Shown piece by piece: positions 873 to 20,595 of a stretch of DNA of 20,869 nt. The notes beneath the pieces were generated by a model. The model ran no database searches. It saw only the letters and a program-made list of their open reading frames with translations, and was not told the origin of the DNA. Numbering within the stretch: position 1 is the stretch's first letter; every line of letters begins with the position of its first letter. A program made the translations under genes and the position numbers. The stretch lies in sequence record NC_005830.1. The stretch is one strand, 5' to 3'.

Positions 873-922
873 GAAAGCCTTATATACTGTTTCTTTGTAT
901 ATAAAAATAGGGGAAAAAAATG
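873..922 (+). promoter_or_regulatory. Early-type promoter/leader cassette (ORF190)
   Basis: GAAAGCCTTATATAC...AAAAATAGGGGAAAAAAATG; 47-nt spacing. Confidence 0.75.
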
Positions 923-1502: not shown

Positions 1503-1613
1503 CTCTGTTCTTCTTTCTTCTGTCCTCATTTGTCTGTTTGTCTGTTTTATTATAAGGGCTGTTATTGTACTAGTTTATCTGATTTATGGGCATAAAAACG
1601 GGGAAAAATATGG

Positions 1614-1667
1614 GAAAAGTTTTTATACTTTCTCTGACTAACTGATAAACAGGGGTAGAGAAAAGTG
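1614..1667 (+). promoter_or_regulatory. Early-type promoter (ORF99 operon)
   Basis: GAAAAGTTTTTATAC...AAACAGGGGTAGAGAAAAGTG. Confidence 0.65.
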
Positions 1668-1964
1668 GACACACATGAGTTTCATAAATTGTTGATAAAG
1701 GTGGTTGATTTGTTTTTAGAAGACAGGATAAAAGAATTTGAGTTGAAGCTGAACACAACACTTGACGAATTAGAGTTTGAAGAGTTAATCGGAAAGCCTG
1801 ACAGTTCAAATTCAGCAGAAAATAACGGTATTTTTATTGATGAGTATAGCTATGATGCTAGTGAGAATGCTATTAAAAAATTGTTTGTTGAGTATGTGAG
1901 ACAGCCTGAGTTCAAATATACAGTCTTATCTATTAAAGGTGTAAACGATTGGGTGAGAGAGTGA
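1665..1964 (+). CDS. ORF99, conserved acidic protein of unknown function (rudivirus/lipothrixvirus family)
   Basis: GTG start; sequence matches my recollection of AFV1-99. Confidence 0.85.
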   Translation: MDTHEFHKLLIKVVDLFLEDRIKEFELKLNTTLDELEFEELIGKPDSSNSAENNGIFIDEYSYDASENAIKKLFVEYVRQPEFKYTVLSIKGVNDWVRE

Positions 1965-2167
1965 GAATAAAACTATATGTACCGTATCAAGATATCAGAG
2001 ATAACTGTAAAAGAAGAACTGACTTCTACTCTGACTTTGAGATAAGTGTAGATGACATACAGTACATTAGTTTCAGTGAACTGATAAGATTGGTAAAAGC
2101 AAATCCAGAGTACATAGAACAGTTAAAGAAAGTGCTAACAGAATGGGACAAAGGTGAGAGTGGATGA
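1961..2167 (+). CDS. Hypothetical protein, about 68-72 aa
   Basis: The GTG at 1961 overlaps the ORF99 stop and follows a GGTGA SD at 1952-1956. An alternative TTG start lies at 1949. Confidence 0.75.
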   Translation: MRIKLYVPYQDIRDNCKRRTDFYSDFEISVDDIQYISFSELIRLVKANPEYIEQLKKVLTEWDKGESG

Positions 2168-2637
2168 GTGAAATGAGTGTGGTTGAATATGAAGTAGTTT
2201 CAAAGAACCTTACTAGTAAGATGAGTCATGAGTTACTGTTTTCAGTCAAAAAGAGGTGGTTTGTAAAGCCGTTTAGGCATGACAGACAATTAGGCAAACT
2301 ACATTACAAACTGTTACCAGGCAATTACATCAAATTCGGTCTATACGTATTAAAAAACCAGGATTATGCGAGGTTTGAGATTGCATGGGTACATGTAGAC
2401 AAAGACGGAAAGATAGAAGAAAGAACAGTGTACAGCATTGAGACATATTGGCATATCTTCATTGACATTGAAAATGACTTAAATTGCCCTTACGTTTTAG
2501 CGAAATTTATTGAAATGCGTCCTGAATTTCACAAGACTGCATGGGTTGAGGAGAGTAATTACAGTATTGCAGAAGACGATATACAGATGGTAGAGAGTAT
2601 CAAGCGATATCTGGAGAGAAAGATAGCAAGTGATTGA
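2164..2637 (+). CDS. ORF157, viral nuclease (AFV1 ORF157 family)
   Basis: ATGA-coupled to the upstream gene. The nuclease call rests on recalled literature for AFV1 ORF157, not on a motif. Confidence 0.75.
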   Translation: MSEMSVVEYEVVSKNLTSKMSHELLFSVKKRWFVKPFRHDRQLGKLHYKLLPGNYIKFGLYVLKNQDYARFEIAWVHVDKDGKIEERTVYSIETYWHIFIDIENDLNCPYVLAKFIEMRPEFHKTAWVEESNYSIAEDDIQMVESIKRYLERKIASD

Positions 2638-2809
2638 GGTTTCTAGTATGGAAAGGGTCTATCAGTGTCTAAGATGCGGGCTAACATTTAGAACTAAGAA
2701 ACAGTTAATCAGACATCTGGTAAACACTGAAAAAGTAAACCCGCTATCAATCGATTACTATTATCAGTCTTTCTCTGTCTCTCTGAAAGATGTAAACAAG
2801 ATTATCTGA
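2630..2809 (+). CDS. 59-aa zinc-finger DNA-binding protein (AFV1p06-like; C-x2-C-x12-H-x4-E)
   Basis: Manual translation: MIEVSSMERVYQCLRCGLTFRTKKQLIRHLVNTEKVNPLSIDYYYQSFSVSLKDVNKII. Absent from the supplied ORF track. Confidence 0.9.
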   Translation: MIEVSSMERVYQCLRCGLTFRTKKQLIRHLVNTEKVNPLSIDYYYQSFSVSLKDVNKII

Positions 2810-2814
2810 ATATC

Positions 2815-2820
2815 TTTTTT
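2815..2820 (+). terminator. Oligo-T terminator
   Basis: T6 run plus pyrimidine tract after the zinc-finger gene. Confidence 0.5.
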
Positions 2821-2850
2821 CTCTCTGTTTCTCCTTCTGGTCTGATAACA

Positions 2851-2899
2851 GAAAACTTTTTTAAGCCTGACGCGGTATTATTTAATGGTGAAAAAAATG
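2851..2899 (+). promoter_or_regulatory. Early-type promoter/leader cassette (ORF95 operon)
   Basis: GAAAACTTTTTTAAG...GGTGAAAAAAATG; 46-nt spacing. Confidence 0.7.
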
Positions 2900-3184
2900 G
2901 GAAATGAAACGGGAAAGGAAACAAGTGGAAAAGAACAAGATAAAGTGAAAGATGTGATAATACGGTTAGTAGAAGAAGACGGTAGAATAGCAGTCTATCT
3001 GGTACAAGGACTGAATACAGAATTTCTAGGATACGCTGATGAGATACAATTGGCTAAAGAAATTGCAAAGTTGAACAAGTTCATAAGCATATGGAGACTG
3101 AATCCCTTAGACCACAGATTAAGGGATTACTTAAGACAAGAGATTATAGAGAGACTGGTAAGAGTCATGGCATACATGATGTGA
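2897..3184 (+). CDS. Hypothetical protein, 95 aa; paralog of the 75-aa ORF at 20314-20541
   Basis: The ATG at 2897 follows a GGTGA SD (the track starts at 2885). Three blocks of similarity to ORF75. Confidence 0.85.
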
Positions 3185-3188
3185 GAGT

Positions 3189-3368
3189 ATGAGGAAAGTT
3201 GCATTTAAAGTGAATGAAGACTTGTTAGAACTGCTAGACAAGTATGCTATAAAACACGGATTGAGTAGAAGTGAAGTAATCAGAGAGGCAATAAAAAACA
3301 TGGTGAAGGAAGAGTTAGAGAAAGACAGTATAATAGTGGCAAGAGTGGAAAAAATTAGGATATGGTGA
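3189..3368 (+). CDS. Ribbon-helix-helix (CopG-like) regulator, 59 aa
   Basis: [39 protein letters not shown]... shows the RHH pattern. Not in the ORF track. Confidence 0.88.
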
Positions 3369-3373
3369 TTCTA

Positions 3374-3607
3374 ATGGAAAGAATGCTACTGAAAAAACTG
3401 TATGCCTTGGACGATATACAAGTTGGTATATTCGAGGTAGAGAGCAAAATACAGTACTATATTGCAGTGCTAATAGACGGCTTAAACTTTGAGGTTTGGG
3501 GAAAGGGGAAAACCCCATATGAGGCGATTATTAACGCTTCAGAAAAGTGGAGCAATAGTTTCGGGGGCTTCAACCCCTTCCGTGAAGCTCTGCGTTTGAG
3601 GTGGTAA
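3374..3607 (+). CDS. 77-aa protein with a HicB-like N-terminal-domain motif
   Basis: The ATG follows a GGTGA SD at 3364-3368. [14 protein letters not shown] resembles the HicB-like G-x-T-x-x-E-A-x-x-N-A motif. Confidence 0.7.
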
Positions 3608-3608
3608 T

Positions 3609-3755
3609 GTGAGAGTTGTAACATTTAAGGCAGAAGAAGAACTGTTAGCATTACTGGACAGATATGCAATGAACAAAGGGCTGTACAGGAGTGAAGTAAT
3701 CAGAGAGGCAATAATAGAATTTCTTAGCGTTAGGGGGTACAAAGTTAATGGCTAA
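3609..3755 (+). CDS. Second RHH regulator, 48 aa
   Basis: GTG start; [48 protein letters not shown]. Not in the ORF track. Confidence 0.85.
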
Positions 3756-4248: not shown

Positions 4249-4669
4249 TATTCTTCGTGTTGATATTGACCAACCGTTTGATTATCTGGACAAGCAGTTT
4301 TACGGGAATCTGACACTCAGAAAGTTACTAGTCTGGAGAATATTCTATGTAAGTAAAGTCTTCAGTCAGCATGTAGAAAGTCTGGAGTTCAGAAAGTCAT
4401 TGAGTGGAAATATTCATGTTCTTGTTACTATCAATCCAGGCATACAGAGAACACTAGTACCGTTAGCTCAGTTTCTCATGGGTGATGATATAATGAGGAC
4501 TTTCATGAACTTGAAGAGGAAAGGAAAGGGAAACTATTTGTTCAGTTACGGTAATACAGATGCTGACAGATTTTTAGCGGAAAGGCAAATTGCAAGGAAA
4601 CAGAAAGCTTTAAATAGGAAAAAAAGTAAAACTAAAAACGGGGAAAAAAATGGGGAAGGAAAAAGTTGA
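4235..4669 (+). CDS. ORF144, putative minimal AEP-superfamily (primase-like) protein
   Basis: ORF is solid. The function is inferred from LRVDID (D10, D12), SLSGNIH (H61) and GDD-x2-R motifs. Confidence 0.55.
   Translation: MTIVNILRVDIDQPFDYLDKQFYGNLTLRKLLVWRIFYVSKVFSQHVESLEFRKSLSGNIHVLVTINPGIQRTLVPLAQFLMGDDIMRTFMNLKRKGKGNYLFSYGNTDADRFLAERQIARKQKALNRKKSKTKNGEKNGEGKS
4603..4652 (+). promoter_or_regulatory. Early-type promoter/leader cassette embedded in the 3' end of ORF144
   Basis: GAAAGCTTTAAATA...AAAAACGGGGAAAAAAATG; 47-nt spacing. Confidence 0.75.
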
Positions 4670-7761: not shown

Positions 7762-8017
7762 GTCTTTTTTCTATCTCTTTCAAGTCATAGTCAAGCTGTT
7801 CATACAGTTTTCTCTCTTTTATCGGTGCTGTGGCAAAAATTAATCTCAGAATTTCTACTTCTTCTCTCTGTATCTCGGTTATCGGCTTAAGATAACTGTC
7901 TATCTTATTGTCTATAAATCTCACCATCATCCTGTATATCTTATACATACTTGTGATTACAGTTACTACTGTAGCTATCATGAAATATATGTTACTTATC
8001 TCCACCAACAATGACAC
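7727..8017 (-). CDS. Protein of about 94-96 aa with one N-terminal TM helix and a coiled-coil C-terminus
   Basis: Hydrophobic [16 protein letters not shown], then a heptad-like [15 protein letters not shown]. Confidence 0.75.
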
Positions 8018-20313: not shown

Positions 20314-20541
20314 TTATTCAGTGTAGTACCAAGCTAATAGTTTCGCTAATCTGTGTTCTATCTCTTTATTAATGTCACTAGTACTCATTTCCTTTTCTCT
20401 TACTTTTATTAACTCATTAACTAAGCGAAGTTCATCTGCTGGGTTTACGTCATTAAGGTCTCCTATCTTCATCCCGTTATACTTCAATATTAGACTCCCG
20501 TCTTTTTCTTCTTCTATTTCTATCTCTATTTTTGCATGCAT
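20314..20541 (-). CDS. Hypothetical protein, 75 aa; paralog of ORF95 (2897-3184)
   Basis: Carries the cassette leader; aligns by eye with ORF95. Confidence 0.85.
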   Translation of the reverse strand: MHAKIEIEIEEEKDGSLILKYNGMKIGDLNDVNPADELRLVNELIKVREKEMSTSDINKEIEHRLAKLLAWYYTE

Positions 20542-20588
20542 TTTTTTCCCCGTTTTTATATCCGTAAAGCGGATATAAAAACCTTTTC
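20539..20588 (-). promoter_or_regulatory. Early-type promoter/leader cassette with a perfect 13-bp inverted repeat
   Basis: GAAAAGGTTTTTATATCCG-CTTTA-CGGATATAAAAACGGGGAAAAAAATG; 47-nt spacing. Confidence 0.8.
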
Positions 20589-20595
20589 CTGAATT

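Follow-up and report, generated by a model that had tools for sequence, protein, structure and literature searches.

SSV1 A100 and STIV A81 are two small proteins of crenarchaeal viruses with solved structures. The structure of A100 has been available since 2014, and the protein is near-core in fuselloviruses and without an assigned function; A81 is in the same position for STIV. The gene for A100 is the first of the early T6 transcript of SSV1, and A100 is found among the T6-operon candidates of Bhoobalan-Chitty et al. 2024 (PMC11065993). In the same study, a virus-specific early regulatory consensus was derived for Captovirus AFV1. The predicted anti-defence genes listed in its Supplementary Data 1 include AFV1_ORF75 (ADG.26), ORF95 (ADG.27), ORF150 (ADG.28), and "ORF90" (ADG.29), and in that table ORF99 is given as an AcrID1 homologue and ORF116 as AcrIII-1 (PMC11065993).

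The subject of this report is the pair ORF95 and ORF75, that is, the same two genes as ADG.27 and ADG.26. They were flagged by a strong BRE/TATA regulatory sequence common to several small genes, and they appear as separate families, without fold, homology or dimer information and with neither gene assayed (PMC11065993). The papers searched report no activity data for ORF95 or ORF75. Both the promoter cassette and the candidacy for anti-defence have been in print since 2024; the homology proposed for ORF95 and ORF75 is absent from the published table and from PHROGs. That homology link, together with the membership of AFV1 in the A100/A81 fold group, is the modest new content presented here. 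No new kind of system is revealed by the pair.

The two AFV1 genes, their cassette and their neighbours

The window, by which is meant the whole stretch of DNA analysed, is 20,869 bases long and identical to AJ567472 / NC_005830, the full genome sequence of Acidianus filamentous virus 1 (Captovirus AFV1). Both genes are annotated in the AFV1 record. ORF95, with 95 residues, is positioned at 2897-3184 on the plus strand. ORF75, with 75 residues, occupies 20314-20541, a coordinate pair that in the earlier note refers to the minus strand. The placing of the two genes at opposite genome ends is loosely right in that ORF75 is the last gene on the right, but ORF95 starts 2.9 kb in from the left end. 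With an alternative ATG at 2885, ORF95 would be four residues longer. This codon is ATT in the closest relatives, and therefore the annotated start at 2897 stands. The calculated pI of ORF95 is 5.8, which is near neutral; ORF75, with a value of 4.9, is acidic, as is A100 (∼4.9).

Metagenomic homologues of ORF95 number eight and share 64-82% identity in a single 50% cluster, and those of ORF75 number 36, with identities down to 53%. An exhaustive profile search of 1.84 billion representatives recovered no ORF95 relatives beyond this cluster, and therefore no bridging sequences are found among those representatives. Scans of IMG/VR with both families gave no matches. In PHROGs, each protein matched only its own orphan family, the two being separate. 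Neither protein matched any Pfam entry even at E ≤ 10, DUF5517 and DUF1374 included, and NCBIfam and the PDB, the latter searched with single sequences and with profiles, gave no meaningful match. A profile match to AI-designed TIM barrels was rejected as spurious because it is the sum of four weak repeats of ∼8 bits each. The ESM Atlas, searched by features and by shape, yielded only an unspecific resemblance to the ATP synthase epsilon subunit.

The cassette that precedes both genes is characterized by a purine-rich BRE-like element, a TATA-like box, a stretch of ∼22 nt, and GG[GT]GAAAAAAATG, which includes the start codon. The leader motif GGKGAAAAAAATG is present in six copies in the AFV1 genome versus 0.1 expected. 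In the cassette of ORF95 (2848-2899, plus strand), the BRE-like element AGAAAAC lies at 2850-2856 and the TATA-like TTTTTTAA at 2857-2864, followed after ∼22 nt by GGTGAAAAAAATG at 2887-2899. In that of ORF75 (20539-20592, minus strand), the corresponding elements are GGAAAAGG (20589-20582), TTTTTATA (20581-20574), and GGGGAAAAAAATG (20551-20539). Aligned copies, all on the plus strand, precede ORF150 (290-340), a 190-residue gene at 920-1492 (872-922), and ORF115 (4602-4652), the last positioned inside the 3' end of ORF144. That ORF95 and ORF75 are each the first gene after the same cassette, as had been claimed, is confirmed, but the arrangement is not exclusive to them since five genes have it (ORF150, ORF190, ORF95, ORF115, and ORF75). 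Both genes display the strong BRE/TATA and the surrounding sequence that are common to these five AFV1 genes. The cassette is kept upstream of the ORF95 homologues in contigs L002 and L003, and that of ORF75 is kept in the AFV1-like contigs L013-L015. The ORF75 copy of ATV-like viruses lacks the cassette and has a different TATA-like promoter instead.

Several other features of the intergenic regions may be noted. An inverted repeat, TATATCCG-N5-CGGATATA, overlaps the TATA box before ORF75 (20557-20577, minus strand), and a second, TATATAC-N9-GTATATA, overlaps the cassette TATA box before the 190-residue gene (∼884-906, plus strand). Such repeats could be operator sites for a repressor, for example a ribbon-helix-helix (RHH) protein. 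At 1600-1625, ∼40 nt before the GTG codon that starts ORF99, a degenerate leader motif, GGGGAAAAATATG, is directly followed by the TATA-like AAAAGTTTTTATAC; the region looks like two overlapping pieces of the cassette. A T-rich element, TCTTTTTTCTCTCTGTTTC, and its variants are located at 793-811, 1493-1511, 2813-2831, and 7763-7781, after the stop codons of ORF150, the 190-residue gene, ORF59a, and ORF65, respectively. This element is probably a shared archaeal-type terminator, and terminator plus promoter probably form one intergenic module. The gene at 920-1492 is named "ORF90" in the GenBank note and in the 2024 paper, and its actual length is 190 residues.

ORF95 is the first gene of an operon that continues into RHH genes and a replication/recombination module. 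The RHH gene ORF59b (3189-3368, plus strand) begins 4 nt downstream of ORF95, and the 48-residue gene directly after the ORF95 homologue in relatives is an RHH_1 protein (PF01402). This order resembles that of acr-aca operons. ORF59b and ORF48 (3609-3755) are true paralogues, with 65% identity over their first 35 residues and a BLASTP E-value of 2e-12, and a 118-nt direct DNA repeat of 70% identity (3177-3294 and 3597-3714) covers parts of both genes.

Close relatives of AFV1 possess one gene without the other. Two such contigs, L021 and L025, were recovered whole from metagenomes via a mid-contig protein. Contig L021 (18,960 bp) is a near-complete AFV1 relative with ∼70-90% protein identity. 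It carries an ORF75 homologue as its terminal gene and lacks ORF95 along with the whole AFV1 block from ORF99 to ORF77 (ORF99, ORF72, ORF157, ORF59a, ORF95, ORF59b, and ORF77). Contig L025 (19,024 bp, near-complete) has an ORF95 homologue in a conserved context. A homologue of ORF75 is absent from it in any frame, and its terminal repeats adjoin the promoter of the ORF108 homologue. The same contig carries an extra B116-like gene (AcrIII-1 family) beside DUF1374 and DUF3258 genes. In AFV1 relatives, the left arm (1600-3610 of the window) behaves as a variable accessory island.

An ORF75 homologue of 79 residues, 77% identical, is also encoded at 10001-10240 of contig L016 (JGI 3300026762, 55 kb) and in L017-L019 (contigs of 9-55 kb). 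The L016-type contigs are bicaudavirus-like, with ATV_ORF273-like, MoxR, and VWA genes. This distribution, as read from the sequences, indicates recent exchange of ORF75 between unrelated Acidianus virus families. No ORF95 homologue is found in the 20 kb of ATV-like contig examined. An unannotated A100 homologue is present on the same 55-kb contig (16688-17005, minus strand), 6.5 kb from the ORF75 homologue.

Predicted folds and a putative early role

The model of ORF75, built with its alignment, has a pLDDT of 92 and a pTM of 0.79. It contains three strands delineated by residues 7-11, 17-21, and 24-28 and two helices formed by residues 34-50 and 55-74. The model of ORF95 has a pLDDT of 68 and a pTM of 0.44. 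Its first 17 residues are disordered, and they are followed by strands at 20-27, 30-37, and 40-47 and helices at 49-68 and 73-94. When the predicted monomer folds are compared, both models are β3-α2 with the same order of elements, that of ORF95 being weak at this pLDDT.

A search of ∼48,000 PDB representatives with the ORF75 model gave SSV1 A100 (4lid_B) with a Z-score of 8.9 and a root-mean-square deviation of 2.0 Å for 74 residues, and STIV A81 (3rkl_A) with a Z-score of 8.3 and 1.9 Å for 67 residues. The next match had a Z-score of 6.2. With Foldseek, 4lid was likewise the first match. The model is composed of three antiparallel strands and a two-helix hairpin that superpose on 4LID and 3RKL, which places ORF75 in the A100/A81 fold group. 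In BFVD, the best non-self matches of the ORF75 model were ASV1 C96 (E = 3e-3) and AFV1 ORF95 (rank 3, E = 0.019, probability 0.99). Those of the ORF95 model were SSV6 C93 (E = 1.5e-3) and ASV1 C96 (0.047), with ORF75 at rank 11 (probability 0.96). By tblastn, SSV6 C93 and ASV1 C96 are homologues of A100. When the PDB was searched widely with the ORF95 monomer model, which is weak (pLDDT 68), the matches were generic helical hairpins only, and neither 4lid nor 3rkl was among them.

A100 itself belongs to Pfam family DUF5517 (PF17639) with a score of 219.7 bits; the scores of ASV1 C96 and ARV1 ORF102 are 34.7 and 26.5 bits against a cut-off of 27. In profile-profile comparisons with an enlarged A100 alignment, for which homologues were taken from annotated virus records, the matches of ORF95 (P = 0.002) and ORF75 (P = 0.02) were weak and covered the two helices. 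The AFV1 proteins are outside DUF5517 as defined and are at most remote relatives within the same fold group. The A100 family is also represented in ARV1 (ORF102), in SMV1, and in an ATV-like contig. ARV1 ORF102 (1397-1705 of L020, AJ875026) is assigned to the family with an hhalign probability of 95% and a DUF5517 score just under the cut-off; its gene is situated 1.4 kb inside the left terminus of this rudivirus genome and has a 35%-identical homologue in SMV1.

On the basis of these results, the explanation that we favour, with moderate confidence, is that ORF95 and ORF75 are early, dimeric, accessory factors and relatives of A100 and A81. They would belong, as strongly diverged members, to a single structural family of small proteins from crenarchaeal viruses, with a predicted fold of three antiparallel strands followed by a two-helix hairpin and with SSV1 A100 (4LID) and STIV A81 (3RKL) as its solved representatives. 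Each gene is the first behind the repeated strong-promoter and short-leader cassette of AFV1, and because of this position both proteins are probably made early and abundantly. The working unit is most likely a dimer, which in the model has the first strands edge to edge and the four helices in a bundle. As for the role, we can only infer that each protein is most likely an accessory early factor that would bind a host or viral partner, and as such a candidate for anti-defence. The points for an accessory role are the early-type promoter, the loss of either gene in close relatives, the transfer of ORF75 between virus families, the small size and acidity of the proteins, the neighbouring genes for the Acr homologues ORF99 and ORF116, and the order of ORF95 followed by an RHH gene. 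The published anti-defence prediction fits the patchy distribution of ORF95 and ORF75. Against this explanation, no pairwise or HMM-to-sequence match is significant alone, and the near-core status of A100 and the title of its PDB entry, "DNA binding scaffold", suit replication or transcription better than anti-defence.

The last point leads to a different role for the same fold, in which the proteins would form oligomers along viral DNA or RNA, with the organisation of early transcription or replication as their task and no part in counter-defence. The match of ORF75 to 4lid and 3rkl is compatible with such an early nucleic-acid-binding scaffold or regulator, as are the description of A81 as a PCNA-like ring in a review citing a thesis (PMC5867849), the tabulation of A100 as a "Pur-alpha repeat" putative regulator and near-core fusellovirus gene (PMC9608457), the title chosen by the depositors of the A100 structure, and the continuation of the ORF95 operon into RHH genes and the replication/recombination module. 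DNA binding by A100, however, is taken only from that title, the proteins are acidic (ORF75 and A100) or nearly neutral (ORF95), and ORF75 moves between unrelated virus families. Moreover, the absence of each AFV1 gene from one close relative is not what would be expected of an essential factor in replication. With respect to the Pur-alpha assignment, no PUR proteins were observed among the top 50 structural matches of the ORF75 model. The PUR repeat consists of a four-stranded sheet and a single helix, and two such repeats pair into a PUR domain; the AFV1 models have three strands and two helices, and the modelled two-fold pairing appears only loosely reminiscent of the pairing of PUR repeats. 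A scaffold or regulator is thought rather unlikely, and the anti-defence/accessory role is rated somewhat higher for the AFV1 pair.

Sequence relationship of ORF95 and ORF75

A pairwise comparison of the two proteins shows little. BLASTP gives no match of ORF95 to ORF75 at E ≤ 100, and the Smith-Waterman score is equalled by 1-3% of shuffles (p ∼0.01-0.03). When the 40 AFV1 proteins are compared all against all by BLASTP, the pair comes 24th with E = 0.44. The two are reciprocal best matches, but the genuine paralogue pairs ORF132/ORF140 and ORF48/ORF59b rank far higher. The pairwise similarity alone is no better than chance.

A signal is present at the family level. Comparison of the ORF95 family (n = 8) with the ORF75 family (n = 36) by hhalign produced 71 colinear columns with a score of 26.0, a P-value of 3.2e-4, and a probability of only 39%. 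With the same settings, column shuffles of the ORF75 alignment scored 11.0 ± 2.4 on average, the real score being reached in 1 of 250, and block shuffles scored 13.4 ± 2.8, the real score being reached in 0 of 250. Reversed alignments score ∼15. The family-level signal is real but modest.

The family HMMs were also searched against 1348 six-frame ORFs from gathered archaeal-virus DNA. Outside its own family, the ORF75 HMM ranked the ORF95 family first (E = 0.008-0.011) and the ASV1 homologue of A100 next (0.014). The ORF95 HMM gave three A100-family proteins (0.008-0.046, or up to ∼0.05) and then ORF75-family proteins (0.2). The A100 HMM gave the unannotated A100 homologue on the ATV-like contig (6.5e-6) and then AFV1 ORF75 (0.004). 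One by one these values are marginal, but a closed triangle of this type would seem hard to obtain by chance.

The six peptide strings quoted in the earlier note are all present and colinear, and correspond to residues 22-33, 46-59, and 79-94 of ORF95 and 7-19, 34-47, and 57-72 of ORF75. The signature drawn from them survives in part. The C-terminal EI-x-x-RL helix is in the correct register (offset 22) and the strand block is about right, but the "ADE" motif is not. As quoted, the "ADE" block has an offset of 12 and is six residues out of register, given that hhalign, MAFFT, the helix boundaries, and the modelled interface all indicate an offset of 18. The alanine is AFV1-specific in both families, which read Y[VT]DE and P[IL]DE. 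The "ADE" alignment was rejected as a register error. Note that a 4-residue gap at the start of helix 2 in the hhalign alignment coincides with the four extra residues of the 79-residue ORF75 variants.

Could the likeness have arisen without common ancestry? According to this explanation, two unrelated strand-plus-helical-hairpin proteins would be alike by chance in their charged amphipathic helices and would have been chosen by eye among 780 pairs. The empty BLASTP result and the rank of 24th in the proteome comparison are what it would predict, as are the hhalign probability of 39% and the one column shuffle that scored higher. Additionally, PHROGs and the 2024 anti-defence screen keep the proteins in separate families, the ORF95 model does not recover A100 or A81 from the PDB, and a small β3-α2 layout could have arisen repeatedly. 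It is countered by the agreement of three independent lines, namely the profiles, the database-wide reciprocal ranking including A100, and a one-to-one mapping of the modelled interface. The order of elements is identical, helix ends and loop lengths match, and the sole helix 2 indel is positioned precisely where ORF75-family members differ by four residues. Separate origins are for these reasons judged unlikely.

From the family profiles, the predicted structures, and the modelled dimer taken together, ORF95 and ORF75 are in our view probably distant homologues. The earlier claim of paralogy therefore stands as very distant homology inside the wider SSV1 A100 / STIV A81 fold group but not as a recently diversified pair.

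The modelled dimer and comparison with described systems

The complex of ORF95 (residues 18-95) with ORF75 was modelled along with controls and with our own alignments. The ipSAE values were 0.71, 0.86, and 0.83 (median 0.83) versus 0.08 for the best control. The partner pLDDT was at least 84, contact agreement between runs was at least 92%, and there were ∼65 contacts. The same ipSAE mark is reached by 58 of 80 solved complexes and by 2 of 110 mismatched pairs, counts that are rough because our own alignments were used. Close cousins of a true partner also pass this test.

The interface is formed by residues 18-26, 52/56/59/60/63, and 80/83/84/87/88/90/91/94/95 of ORF95 and by residues 1-9, 34/38/41/42/45, and 58/61/62/65/66/68/69/72/73 of ORF75. 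It displays pseudo-two-fold symmetry, with strand 1 against strand 1, helix 1 against helix 1, and helix 2 against helix 2. The two sets map one-to-one under the hhalign alignment (helix 1 with an offset of 18, helix 2 with an offset of 22), and this mapping is an independent check of that alignment. In each family, conservation is highest at the residues of the modelled interface. Indeed, the invariant Ile 61 and Leu 65 to Tyr 72 of ORF75 lie within it, and the helix LAKLLAWY is invariant in all homologues including the ATV-like copies. The pLDDT of ORF95 is 68 for the monomer model but 87-92 within the complex, which suggests that its fold needs a partner subunit.

The model supports putative binding between ORF95 and ORF75, and the heterodimer suggested in the earlier note is upheld by the controls but not as an obligate pairing, since relatives keep one gene without the other. 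Contig L021 has kept ORF75 alone and L025 ORF95 alone, and therefore each protein can do without the other. A heterodimer is unlikely to be obligate. From this distribution, ORF95 and ORF75 most likely assemble as separate homodimers that have one architecture in common, which is the simplest and more likely reading. Mixed dimers may also form in AFV1. If the paralogues formed mixed and pure dimers via the conserved strand-plus-four-helix interface, one fold would provide three dimer species with different outer surfaces and a wider target range for an A100-like early factor, whether anti-defence or regulatory, which is quite doubtful. If true, this would be a combinatorial widening of targets by a 21-kb virus and the first mechanistic handle on the widespread A100/A81 family. 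Least probable of all, and in our opinion very unlikely, is a dedicated heterodimer in which the two proteins are halves of one AFV1 complex that works only with both, for although the complex model passes (0.83 versus 0.08, with runs in agreement), the common promoter/leader cassette would co-express both genes, and the ORF95 fold is confident in the complex only, L021 at ∼80% protein identity has ORF75 without ORF95 and L025 the reverse, ATV-like viruses have ORF75 homologues with the invariant interface helix and no ORF95 homologue in 20 kb, the pseudo-symmetric interface is that expected from homologous homodimer-formers, and the test also admits close cousins of a true partner.

Of the described systems, the sets of AcrID1 (DUF1374) genes at rudivirus termini provide an analogy only. 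They too consist of several diverged small paralogues that lie towards the ends of linear Ligamenvirales genomes and have an early regulatory sequence in common, and AFV1 ORF99, an AcrID1 homologue, lies 1 kb from ORF95. They differ in family and fold, and AFV1 has only two copies, which are far apart and are candidates predicted from sequence.

STIV A81 (3RKL), with 81 residues and a β3-α2 fold, is closer. A weak profile match was obtained in helix 1 (P = 0.002), and no sequence match to ORF95 is detectable. It differs in that it has been described as a PCNA-like ring (PMC5867849, citing a thesis), as opposed to the two-fold dimer modelled for the AFV1 pair, and in the location of its gene, which is mid-operon in a circular turrivirus genome.

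The A100 family of SSV1 differs from the AFV1 proteins in several respects. The latter have no Pfam match, and the profile-profile P-values are only 0.002-0.02. A100 is a near-core gene of the fuselloviruses, whereas close relatives of AFV1 can dispense with one or the other of the AFV1 genes. A100 has an N-terminal extension that is absent from ORF75, and the strands of ORF75 are shorter. If AFV1 does contain two remote members, the A100/A81 group extends to the Ungulaviridae and likewise to AFV1 relatives, an ATV-like virus, ARV1, and SMV1, and it would then be connected with the class of promoters from which archaeal anti-defence genes are now predicted. The homology link would merge two published orphan candidate families, ADG.26 and ADG.27, and the gains would be a testable dimer interface and natural single-gene variants, L021 and L025, for comparison. 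As for the likenesses to A100, the proteins are of ∼75-105 residues with three strands and then two helices, they have in common the C-terminal helix motif K/Q-E-[IV]-x-x-x-[LI]-A/V-K/R-[LI]-[LM], and A100, as ORF75, is acidic. Finally, A100 is encoded by the first gene behind a strong BRE/TATA early promoter and in fuselloviruses is often followed by CopG-like (RHH) genes, just as ORF95 is followed by an RHH gene in AFV1.
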